Part shown: positions 26,416-33,840 of the stretch, piece by piece | How positions within the stretch are numbered: position 1 is the first letter of the stretch | Layout of the letters: each line of letters opens with the position of its first letter | Assembly: GCA_002269645.1 (NCBI GenBank) | Contig: NIVC01001815.1 | Span: 11,739-75,738, forward strand | Direction of reading: 5' to 3' | Length of the DNA: 64,000 nucleotides | From: Macrostomum lignano | Lineage: Eukaryota | Position numbers and translations under genes: made by a program | Notes under the pieces: model-generated | Seen by the model: the letters and a program-made list of their open reading frames with translations, nothing else | Told to the model about the DNA's origin: nothing | Database searches by the model: none

Positions 26416-26631
26416 GGTCTGTTTGTCGGTCTGTCTGTCTTTCCATCTGTCTGTTTGTCGGTCTGTCTGTCTGTCTGTCTGTCTGTCTGTCTGTCTGTCT
26501 GTCTGTCTGTCTGTCTGTCTGTCTGTCTGTCTGTCTGTCTGTCTGTCTGTCTGTCTGTCTGTCTGTCTGTCTGTCTGTCTGTCTGTCTGTCTGTCTGTCT
26601 GTCTGTCTGTCTGTCTGTCTGTCTGTCTGTC
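26416..26631. repeat. (GTCT)n microsatellite, flank at the 3' end of the LINE
   Basis: Direct reading; abuts the element at 26632. Confidence 0.98.
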
Positions 26632-29600
26632 GGCAATGGTGCGGGGCCAGTTAGGGCGGTCCGCCAGTACGTATTGCAGCGTTCTCTTCGTTTGGGAAGA
26701 AAGAGGCTCGTCTAGTTGCCCGTAGGAACCGGACGAACGTCATCGATAGATTGTAGTTTCGTAGGTTTGAACCGAGGTGGTTAAGTCGCTCCCTGGTGAA
26801 AAACGGGCATTGACAAAGAAATGATTAGCATCTTCATTGTCGTACTCGCAAAATGGGCACAGTTCATTCCGGATGTCGGCCCCGGAGAAAGCAGTGCCTA
26901 GCGAAGCAGCCATGCCCCGTGAGGGTCATAGCAAGAGCCCGGATGTCCTTCCTGCTTTGGTTCAGGAGGACAGTTTGGAGCTTTCGGGATGGACGAGCGA
27001 CCGCCGCACGTGATTGGCGGCAGGTGGTCAGGTTCATCCATCTGTCCCTGTGCAGGTCGGAGGCCCAGGCATCAATGCTACGATTGATGGTGGCCGCAGG
27101 GATTGGAGCCAAGGGCAGAGGTCCCAGAAGGGAGCCGCTGCTCCCTTGCTTTGCAAGCGAGTCGGCCAGCTCGTTTCCAGGGAAACCCGCGTGACCTGAG
27201 ATCCATTTGAGCTGGACAGCATTTTTGCGTCCCAGCGTAATGAGCATCCGGACGCAGTCAGAGACCGTCCGGGAGGCCGTAGTGGTGTGACAGAGGGCTA
27301 GCAGAGCCGCCTGGCTGTCGGAGTGAAAACGATATAGTTTTTCCGGAGGTGTTTTTGCTGCAAAGCTCTGCAGCGCAAGAGCTAATAGCAAGGACCTCGT
27401 TCTGGAAGACAGTAGAGAGTCTTCCAGTGTGCTGGGCATGCGTGGCGAGCACGCGGCCATTGATGAGAATGCAGATCCCAAAGCCGGAGAGACAGTCTTT
27501 TAGGGATCCGTCTGTGTAGCAGTGGACCTCCTGGGGATTCCAGTGGTCGTTAGCCTCCTCTCCATGAGGAAGAATGACCTTGAATTGAAGACAGAGGTTG
27601 AGCGTTCGAGGTTCCCCGTCCGAAAGGACGTTGAGGCCGCCACTCTCCTGCAGATCTTTGAGACAGAGGTCGGAATGAGACAAAAGCTTGCGCTTAGCCA
27701 CTGCCCTCTGGGGCTTGAGAGTAATGCCGGTGTCGATGAGACGCCGGGCTGCTTTGGCTGCCTCCCTGCGGACGAAAATGTCCAGTGGAGGCAGGTCAAG
27801 GAAGGCGTTGAGGCCGTCGAAGGGAGCCGAGGGCGGGGCGCCCATCATCATTCGACATGCACGCCCCTGCACTCGTTTAAGAGCCTCGAAGCAGGTCTTA
27901 ATCTGCAGGGCACTCGCCCAGATCAGTCCGGCATAGGAGATCGCCGGCCTGACCATAGCAATGTAGATCCACCATAGGCGTTTGGGGTAAGGCCCCAAGT
28001 ATGGCCAACCGCCCTGCGCAGTTGCGCCAGGATCGCGAAGGCCTTCTTAGTCTTGGCATGAACATGCGGGGACCAGTTCAGCCTGTGATCAAGGGTGACC
28101 CCAAGACACTTGACTTGCTTACGGAAGGGGATTTCCTGTCCGTAGAGCGTGAGATGGCGGGATTGCCACTTCGTCCTGCTGGTGAACATAACCACAGCGG
28201 TCTTAGTCTCGGAGAGCTTCAGACCGCATTGGTCCGCCCAACGTTCAGCAGTGTTGATGAAGTTCTGAAGGAGATCACGCAGGGTGTCCGGCGATGGCCC
28301 AGAGGCTACCGCCGTGACATCGTCCGCATAACCGACCTTCAGAATAGGGTTAGGACAGGCGTCCCGTAGGAGCTCGTCGATAACCATGTTCCAGAGAATT
28401 GGAGAGAGAACACCACCCTGCGGACAGCCTTTGCAGACGGGAACCGTCCGTTCATGACCTAGCAGGTGTGCCGTAGCAGATCTGTGGCTAATCATGTACA
28501 TGATCCAGCGCGTGAGGTGAGAATGTGTCATTCTCGTTTGTAGAAAAGGACGTTGTCAAAGGCTCCCACGATATCCAGGAAGACCGCTAGGGCATAGCCG
28601 TTGCACAAGCACAGCTTTCTCCAGCGTGTCCACCAGGATATGCAGCGCACTTTCGCTGGAGAGTCCCGCCCGAAAAGCATGCTGGTTTTTACTAAGCGGC
28701 ATGTTCTTTAGTTCCACGGACTGCAGGCGCCAGAGCACCAGCCGTTCCATCAGTTTGACCATCGAGGAGGTCAAGCTGATTGGTCGAAAGGATTTAACAG
28801 AATGGTAGTCCGGGCGGCCGGGCTTAGGAATGAAAATCACCCTCACCTCAGTCCACGGCTTCGGGACACAACCAAACGTAATGCAGGCTTTAAGAAGCTT
28901 GCACAGGTGCATGAGGAACCTCTTGCATTGGACCGCCTCTCTGATTAGGGCTGGTACGATGCCTCGGGTCCAGGCGCCTTGTAAGGCTTGAAGGAGTTTG
29001 CAGCTTTGATGATGCGCTTCTTCGTGATAAAGGAGGAGGCAAGAAACGACCCGCCTTCGGCATGGTCCGAGGGGTCATTTGTGAGAGCCTCGTTGGGGAA
29101 GGAGGCTGAAAGCATAAGCTCTAGCGTCTCCCCAGGGTTCTCGATATGCGTGCCATCGGCCCGCTTTACCGAGGAAAGTTTGGATATTTTGTCCAAGGTC
29201 AGCGCTTTTACTATGCGGGATGTAGGGCGTGCGCCCTCCAGTTCCTCACAGTATTCACGCCATTTGTTAGCCTTAGCGTTCCTGACCTCCTTTTTGAACT
29301 CATGAATTGCTTCAAGGTAGGCGGTCTCGCTGGGCGTTTAGATTTGGTGGCCCTGCGATGTAACCGTTTGGCTTTGCGGCGAAAGTCGCCACTCTTGGGG
29401 TTCCACCACGGGGCCGACGTTTTGCCCCTGTAGGCTTTAAGCGGGCAGGAGGCCTCGAAAGCAGAGGTTAGCGAATCCGTGAGAACAGCCGCATAATCCT
29501 CCGTTTCTTGGCACGAATCAATGGAGGTAGGAAAGCTGGAAGGTAGGTGTTCCAAAGGGTTGCGTCCAGGGTGAACTTGAAGGCCTCCCAATCGGTGTCC

Positions 29601-32600: not shown

Positions 32601-33613
32601 CGCTCATGGCCGGGATCCAAACACGGAAGCGTTGGGTCCTCTTGCGTTCGCCTTCAGAGGCGAAAAAGAGATTGGGAGCTCCTTCTTCCACTTAGCTCGC
32701 TGAGCCGGCGGCTGCTCTCCTCCGATGAGCACCAGAGAAAAATGCAGCCGTCAGTCTTGGCTGATTTGACCACCTCCACGGAGATGCCCTCCATGGTGAG
32801 GTCGATGAGCCCAGCATCGATGGTGCGCCAGGCGTCGTCAAACTCGGTGGCCGTTAGGTTCCTCACCGAGAATGATGGTGGCCGGTGGGAGTGCAGCCCG
32901 TTGAGCCTTGGAGGCGTAGCTCTCCTTGGTCTTGGTCTTGGTGGTGGCAGACGCGGCGGTTCCCGAGGGCCCGGCCGCTGTAGCCTGGTTGGCGGCATGC
33001 TGGAGGGCTGAGGTGTCCTTGAGGGAGGCAGAGCCATCGGCAGAGTCTTTCGGCTCCACCGCGGCTCCATCCTCACCATGGGGCTCCTCCGACGCAGCAC
33101 CGCCAGCCGACCGTGCCAACATGTCTGCAGCAGCTTTTTGTCGCCGCTGCTCGATTTGCGCGCATTGCGGTTGCGTTTGGCTTCAGCGGAACGGCCGCCA
33201 TGGCGGTTTCGCTTGCGCCTTGCGCTCGACTCACCACCGGCGGCACCGGCAGTGGTGTCGGTCTTGTCCCCACCAGTCGGGCTGGGCGGGGCAAAGTTGA
33301 AGCTGCCTTTGGCAGCATCCAGAGCGGCTGGGGTCAACCCAGCTTCATTCGGAGTGGCGGAAGAGGCCATAGCTGGAAGCGAGAAAAGAAGAGAGGTTAA
33401 TGAAGAAAAGAGAGCCGCTCGTGACTGGACTACTCCCCAGCCAAGAGCCCATGGACGCGGCAGACACCGAAGGCTTGGAGTGCACTTTTGGCTGGGCAAA
33501 AACCTGCGGACTGGCCGCATACCCTGTACGGTCAAAGAGTAACACCTCTACGTCAGAGCCGTAGCCAGAGGCACCTGATAGCGCACAGGTACGCGAAACT
33601 GCGGACTGGCCGC
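26632..33613 (-). mobile_element. Full-length non-LTR retrotransposon (ORF1 plus APE-RT-RNase H ORF2; R1/LOA-like), frameshifted, inserted within (GACA)n
   Basis: ORF1 runs from ATG 33370 to about 31846. ORF2 starts at ATG 31853 and shows APE motifs (LQINLQHS, LVQEPW, AGDINAHH, SDHKLI), RT motifs (FRPISLTS, QHAFRAG, GCPQGGVLSP, YADD), RNase H motifs (CYTDGS, VFQNEVLAI, LKWISGHAG..GNELADSLAK) and a C-terminal C-x-F-C..H knuckle. Clade assignment is from domain order and memory. Confidence 0.93.
29962..31474 (+). mobile_element. 5'-truncated sister-family LINE inserted antisense into the endonuclease domain of the host LINE
   Basis: Encodes the RT C-terminus and RNase H paralogous to 27998-26660. 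3' tail TAAGTCAAGTAAGTCAAG. 13-bp TSD GAGATAAGCTCTT at 29949-29961 and 31475-31487. Removing the insert restores host ...VVSEELISLVELCSARNYEL. Confidence 0.93.
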
Positions 33614-33840
33614 TGTCTGTCTGTCTGTCTGTCTGTCTGTCTGTCTGTCTGTCTGTCTGTCTGTCTTTCTGTCTGTCTGTCTGTCTGTCTGTCTGTCTGT
33701 CTGTCTGTCTGTCTGTCTGTCTGTCTGTCTGTCTGTCTGTCTGTCTGTCTGTCTGTCTGTCTGTCTGTCTGTCTGTCTGTCTGTCTGTCTGTCTGTCTGT
33801 CTGTTTGTCTGTCTGTCTGCCTGTCAGTTTGTCTGTCTGC
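33614..33840. repeat. (GTCT)n microsatellite, flank at the 5' end of the LINE
   Basis: Direct reading. Confidence 0.98.

Follow-up and report, generated by a model that had tools for sequence, protein, structure and literature searches.

The 64,000-nt stretch of Macrostomum lignano DNA analysed here (contig NIVC01001815.1 of assembly GCA_002269645.1, positions 11,739 to 75,738 of the forward strand; hereafter the window) contains a long interspersed nuclear element (LINE) lying between two (GACA)n arrays. This main LINE copy occupies positions 26632–33612 of the window on the minus strand, and its 6,981 bp comprise a 5′ untranslated region (UTR), two open reading frames (ORF1 and ORF2, the latter encoding APE endonuclease, reverse transcriptase (RT), RNase H and a CCHC motif), a 19-nt 3′ UTR and a second LINE nested within the endonuclease; subtracting the nested insert and one copy of its target-site duplication leaves ~5,452 bp. 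Tandem Repeats Finder (TRF) and inspection of the sequence bear out the initial annotation of this locus in that both termini adjoin GACA repeats in one orientation, with ~57 units on the 5′ side (33613–33839, minus strand; 56.8 units, 95% matches) and ~54 units on the 3′ side (26417–26631, minus strand; 53.8 units, 93% matches). The same annotation described a full-length LINE in GACA. Insertion between the arrays holds, but intactness does not: ORF1 and ORF2 carry frameshifts and stops, and the nested insert interrupts the element.

The 5′ UTR (33371–33612, minus strand) extends 242 nt upstream of the ORF1 ATG at 33370, which makes it plausible that the 5′ end of the main copy is complete. 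It gave no significant match when compared with the relatives described below. By eye it seemed to resemble sequence upstream in M. lignano gene models, but on comparison only the N-terminus of ORF1 matched these models (E = 4e-4). The first 17 nt of the LINE (CGGCCAGTCCGCAGTTT, minus strand; 33596–33612) recur 95 nt downstream, at 33501–33517, with 94% identity. ORF1 (31846–33370, minus strand) is frameshifted, and its stop codon overlaps the ATG of ORF2 (ATGTCTAG); no Pfam match for ORF1 was obtained in the main copy or in the related sequences L001 and L004.

ORF2 (26651–31853, minus strand) runs from an ATG at 31853 to a TAA at 26653–26651 and has the arrangement of an APE-type LINE, with an N-terminal APE domain followed by RT. 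The N-terminal half of the APE domain lies upstream of the nested insert (31474–31853; tblastn with the relative P0001) and the C-terminal half downstream of it (29660–29961; Pfam Exo_endo_phos_2, E = 8e-17). Further along the same strand are the RT core with its YADD motif (28091–28831; RVT_1, E = 4e-17 and 9e-7), an RNase H domain split by a frameshift (27140–27560; RNase_H, E = 5e-8) and a C-terminal CCHC motif of the form CPFC...H...C, likewise frameshift-split, which was recognized in the sequence (26806–26859). These Pfam matches agree with the earlier identification of an RNase H-bearing LINE. In tblastn alignments, an intact relative of 1,232 aa spans ORF2 end to end via at least eight frame changes, with some matches passing through in-frame stops. 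Between the ORF1 start and the stop codon, the main element keeps the same linear order as intact relatives, and no large internal deletion is visible across ~3.7 kb of ORF2. With ORF2 broken, ORF1 frameshifted and the APE domain hit by a nested insertion, the main LINE copy is dead.

The insert in the APE domain is a LINE of a related family (29962–31476, plus strand), inverted with respect to the main copy and 5′-truncated to the end of RT, RNase H and the CCHC motif. It shares 70% nucleotide identity with the reverse complement of the last 1.4 kb of the main element (blastn). Two copies of a 13-bp target-site duplication, GAGATAAGCTCTT, bound it on the left (29949–29961, plus strand) and on the right (31477–31489, plus strand), and its excision restores a continuous APE domain that aligns over its full length with the TRAS1 endonuclease (EN). 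The target was LINE coding DNA, a non-repeat sequence, and the 13-bp duplication is ordinary. The 271-aa ORF of the nested LINE is 94% identical to part of the M. lignano gene model P0007, with other stretches at 95–97%, and the insert bears ~3 frameshifts of its own. Together with the M. lignano gene models that the main element matches (below), this identity places the window in M. lignano or a species closely related to it. It is the sister element to which the initial annotation had compared the main copy, and it lies here, not elsewhere in the window. The different repeat tail reported for it is present as (TAAGTCAAG)2, but its 3′ UTR measures 115 nt with the tail rather than ~140 nt. ORFs at 49797–52906 (plus strand), first suspected of being the sister element, proved to be a piece of a cadherin-repeat host gene (E = 4e-43).

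Both junctions of the main copy are clean. In minus-strand orientation, array and element meet at the 5′ end as ...GACAGACAG/CGGCCAGTCCGCAG (33613/33612), and element and array at the 3′ end as ...CCGCACCATTGCC/GACAGACAGACA (26632/26631) (in a longer view, ...GGACCGCCCTAACTGGCCCCGCACCATTGCC/GACAGACAGACA). The 5′ end has no filler, and the 3′ end meets the repeat without a poly(A) or (TAAGTCAAG)n tail, giving in this single copy the direct abutment ...CCATTGCC/GACAGACA. The flanking arrays are co-oriented, the upstream one ending in ...GACAG and the downstream one starting with GACAGACA, registers that therefore fit a target-site duplication of 4k+1 nt (1, 5, 9 or 13 nt). The last of these lengths, 13 nt, is the one measured for the nested LINE. 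From the two junctions that can be read (n = 2), the bottom strand would have been nicked at TC^T, namely TGTC^TGTC for the main copy and CTC^TTC for the nested one, and a (GTCT)n strand presents such a site every 4 nt.

Periodicity scored per 40-nt bin located the imperfect GACA units at the outer edges only of both arrays, the 160–200 nt adjoining the LINE being perfect. Such outer-edge-only degeneracy is what the splitting of one array, pure inside and imperfect at its margins, would produce, and is less expected of two independently grown arrays. Beyond the 5′ array, its outer flank bears no trace of the main element's 3′ end, so that this array is not the tail of another copy.

The 19 nt that follow the ORF2 stop codon (CTGGCCCCGCACCATTGCC, 26632–26650, minus strand), a length that the initial annotation had given correctly, align with the first 19 nt of the 3′ UTR of the nested LINE. 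Homology between the two elements runs through the coding end and these 19 nt, and stops exactly at 26632, the GACA junction. Because it ends there, the 3′ end of the main copy looks like an ancestral UTR that was truncated rather than redesigned. The nested copy, the contig L001 (encoding P0001, 57% identity) and L002 (encoding P0003, 45%) have in common a 3′ UTR module, CAGGG..TTAGCGGAATGGGCG..CCCTGCAG[C/A]TAAGTCAAG, located at 31390–31476 of the window, 5878–5966 of L001 and 4286–4364 of L002. RNAalifold applied to the three 3′ UTRs gave a multibranch fold with a CAGGG/CCCTG closing stem and four compensatory pairs. Since the module is conserved across 45–70% identity, it probably serves as the RT recognition element of this group of Macrostomum LINEs. 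The main copy lacks the terminus CAG[C/A]TAAGTCAAG of its relatives, and has 19 nt where they have a long, CCCTGCAGCTAAGTCAAG-type 3′ end. The 3′ flank of L001 is unique sequence, not GACA; the start of that contig appeared to resemble the reverse complement of the main 3′ end, for which blastn gave no support.

The best three protein matches to the main element are full-length Logan proteins with 57%, 53% and 45% identity, and the protein collection yielded no closer homologues beyond ~75% partial or 57% full-length identity. Many partial matches, at 46–75% identity, are chimeric M. lignano gene models: the UniRef “proteins” P0004–P0010, P0047, P0056, P0063 and P0069 combine LINE ORF1 or ORF2 pieces with kinase, LRR, peptidase S8 or other exons, and are an annotation artefact. 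The Macrostomum relatives (the P0007-like nested copy; the M. lignano models P0004, P0006, P0010 and P0056; and Logan L001 and L002) show 45–75% protein identity to the main copy, share its domain order and have an ORF1 like its own (MASSA... start). In the three whose 3′ ends can be seen, the nested copy, L001 and L002, a structured 3′ UTR of ~90–115 nt is present, which the main copy is without. Insertion sites differ within the group as well, the main copy lying in GACA and the nested LINE and L001 in non-repeat DNA. Together these elements are an undescribed and unnamed R1-like LINE family group of Macrostomum.

Comparison of the APE domain with solved structures returned significant matches only to TRAS1 EN (E = 1.4e-15, over the whole domain) and R1Bm EN (E = 1.6e-5), L1 EN being absent even at E up to 10. 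Because these are its best matches, the label R1-like is justified at the level of sequence similarity; it stops short of strict R1-clade membership, and placement in LOA or another R1-related clade is possible. Like the R1-clade APE LINEs of arthropods (R1Bm, TRAS1 and SART1), the main element has two overlapping ORFs, an N-terminal APE domain, RT and a C-terminal CCHC motif. Unlike them, it has an RNase H domain and a flatworm host, and its ORF1 lacks CCHC knuckles. R1, TRAS and SART encode such zinc knuckles in ORF1, whereas those models of related M. lignano families that include ORF1 contain no C-x2-C-x3-5-H-x4-C motif, and none was seen by eye in the ORF1 translation of the main copy. 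Sequence-specific insertion is typical of the classical R1 members; the relatives found here occupy ordinary DNA, where they show 13-bp duplications or end in poly(A). A whitefly homologue with 33% identity carries the NCBI name R1, but it was rejected as an anchor for ribosomal DNA (rDNA) specificity, as it occupies an SMC-gene intron rather than rDNA and has a poly(A) tail. Of the distant relatives that carry RNase H, two, including one within an SMC-gene intron, end in poly(A) and have no tandem repeat at their ends.

The repeat content of the window sets the background for an insertion into GACA. GACA-class arrays make up 3.15% of the window (2.8% without the LINE locus) and all tandem repeats 21% (TRF), so that one LINE in a GACA array is only mildly surprising; no other microsatellite in the window comes close to the ACAG-class repeats in abundance. 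Simple and tandem repeats have been reported as 15% of the M. lignano genome (PMC5730564). Long minisatellites with periods of 13–44 nt are numerous in the window (e.g. 521–1692, 11314–12224, 43090–43952 and 47891–49389), and other arrays include (CTAA)n at 22366–22601 and (CTGC)n at 61312–61678. Two (GACA)n arrays, at 14935–15785 and 19697–19992, have a common 210-bp right flank (15786–15995 and 19993–20201; 98.6% identity) and different left flanks. Local duplication would account for this common flank; alternatively, it is a short repeat unit with a (TGTC)n tail on the minus strand, and in the latter case could be a different source of GACA arrays. The LINE locus itself is intergenic. Pieces of TMEM117 (1674–3732, minus strand; two exons, E = 1e-94 and 1e-30) and of an aldehyde dehydrogenase (C-terminal exon, 38680–39276, plus strand; E = 7e-47) are present in the window, in addition to the cadherin-repeat gene.

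Further copies were sought within the window and beyond it. Searches with the element (blastn) and with 11 relatives (tblastn) detected no other copy or fragment of the LINE group in the 64 kb than the nested one, and none of the three other GACA arrays of the window holds a LINE fragment (0/3). Scans of metagenome contigs for the exact 3′ and 5′ junctions gave no match, and GACA-derived peptide runs (DRQT or LSVC), used as a proxy for flanks, occurred in none of 92 proteins among the homologous gene models.

Microsatellite-specific LINEs known so far join their target repeat at the very 3′ end, having neither a separate tail nor poly(A). Known families include Waldo in (ACAY)n and Mino in (AC)n, both of the R1 clade, Kibi in (TC)n and Koshi in (TTC)n, both of the Tx1 clade, and Dong in (TAA)n, together with a crocodilian Tx1-clade element that targets (TTCC/TTTC)n (PMC3812793, PMC4494074); a family is called target-specific when >20% of its flanks share the target (PMC4494074). 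The literature searched contained no GACA- or ACAG-specific LINE family and no microsatellite statistics for Macrostomum. Like these families, the main copy has the same microsatellite, identically oriented, at either end. Specificity, however, is defined over many copies; there is one copy here, and its nearest relatives are not repeat-targeted.

Our preferred interpretation, held with only moderate confidence, is that a GACA array already in place received a single chance insertion in its pure core, with truncation of the 3′ end at or after integration. By target-primed reverse transcription, an old R1-like LINE would have entered a (GACA)n array of ~110 units. Its 3′ UTR and tail may have been lost because a nick or break in the unstable array primed cDNA synthesis at an internal position of the RNA, or through a later deletion that took in the 3′ UTR together with part of the array. 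A younger LINE from a sister family would then have inserted into the APE domain, while the main copy gathered frameshifts. The location would reflect the abundance and fragility of GACA arrays, perhaps with a loose nick-site preference, and no evolved GACA specificity. We infer the precedence of the array, the route of truncation and the nick-site preference from the state of the locus; a loose preference for TC^T, suggested by the two junctions (n = 2), is a possible middle ground between chance and targeting.

Insertions that are 3′-truncated or endonuclease-independent, at DNA lesions, are documented for human L1; we know of no such events documented for R1-like elements. The main copy resembles them in missing its normal 3′ end and in lying at a break-prone repeat. 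It differs from them in that its 5′ end seems full-length, and the duplication is unreadable inside the repeat. Several points weigh against a one-off event. Two coincidences must be joined, a target that makes up ~3% of the window and a loss that took exactly the 3′ UTR and tail. Terminal deletion by chance has no great likelihood, because no other large deletion is found across the ~3.7 kb of ORF2, and 3′-truncated priming is rare for LINEs that recognize their own 3′ UTR. The APE domain is closest to known repeat-specific R1-clade elements, and with no second copy of the family seen, specificity meets no direct contradiction.

The initial annotation had proposed the opposite, a GACA-targeting lineage, which we regard as a doubtful though serious alternative. 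RNase H-bearing R1-like Macrostomum LINEs would have swapped the structured 3′ UTR for a GACA tail and made their home in the commonest microsatellite: a founder would have lost the structured 3′ UTR, and its RNA, ending in GACA from its own tail or from read-through into the flank, would anneal to the nicked (GTCT)n strand. New copies of Waldo, Mino, Kibi and Koshi land in their own repeats in like manner. The clean junctions, with neither a 3′ tail nor 5′ filler, are what such a lineage would leave, and the APE matches to TRAS1 EN and R1Bm EN but not to L1 EN, the availability of GACA as a safe harbour and the coincidence of the ~3% target with exact loss of the 3′ UTR and tail all point the same way. 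Microsatellite-specific APE LINEs are, moreover, an established category (PMC3812793; PMC4494074). However, the indirect evidence on balance leans the other way. The lineage is known from one copy only, with no visible sign of abundance, in a region with a high background of arrays, and its 19-nt UTR looks like a cut-off ancestral UTR. Sister families, seen in the window and in a related sample, have retained the conserved 3′ UTR and inserted at other kinds of site, and the two distant relatives with RNase H end in poly(A) and are not located in tandem repeats. Nor did the other GACA arrays of the window contain a fragment, and no relative above ~75% identity appears among the M. lignano gene models, although other families of the group were captured there repeatedly.

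We consider it improbable that the arrays are younger than the insertion, in which case a proto-microsatellite of two or three GACA units would have been duplicated as the target site and both copies expanded to ~55 units. The registers would allow this, fitting a 4k+1-nt duplication such as GACAGACAGACAG, and arrays that are 93–95% pure beside a heavily decayed element indicate ongoing repeat turnover. Yet two independent expansions to near-equal length would be required, degenerate units at the outer edges only would be less expected, and the missing 3′ UTR and tail, due between the element and the 3′ copy of the duplication, are left unexplained. An assembly artefact, in which a mis-join through GACA arrays set an unrelated LINE between them, is very unlikely: the M. 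lignano genome is notoriously hard to assemble on account of its simple repeats (PMC5730564), but both junctions are clean and co-oriented, and colinearity with intact relatives extends from the beginning of ORF1 through to the stop codon of the element.

At present the locus holds one dead LINE copy in a repeat-rich genome, and its worth lies in the undescribed R1-like family group that it reveals, in the conserved 3′ UTR of that group and in the clean nested insertion. If GACA targeting were true, this would be the first GACA-specific LINE and the first microsatellite-specific LINE in flatworms, and the few such elements known would gain both a target repeat and a phylum. It would be an instance, and a recent one, of a LINE trading recognition of its RNA 3′ end for annealing to the target repeat. 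As a possible contributor to array growth, such a lineage could help explain the abundance of tandem repeats in Macrostomum genomes.

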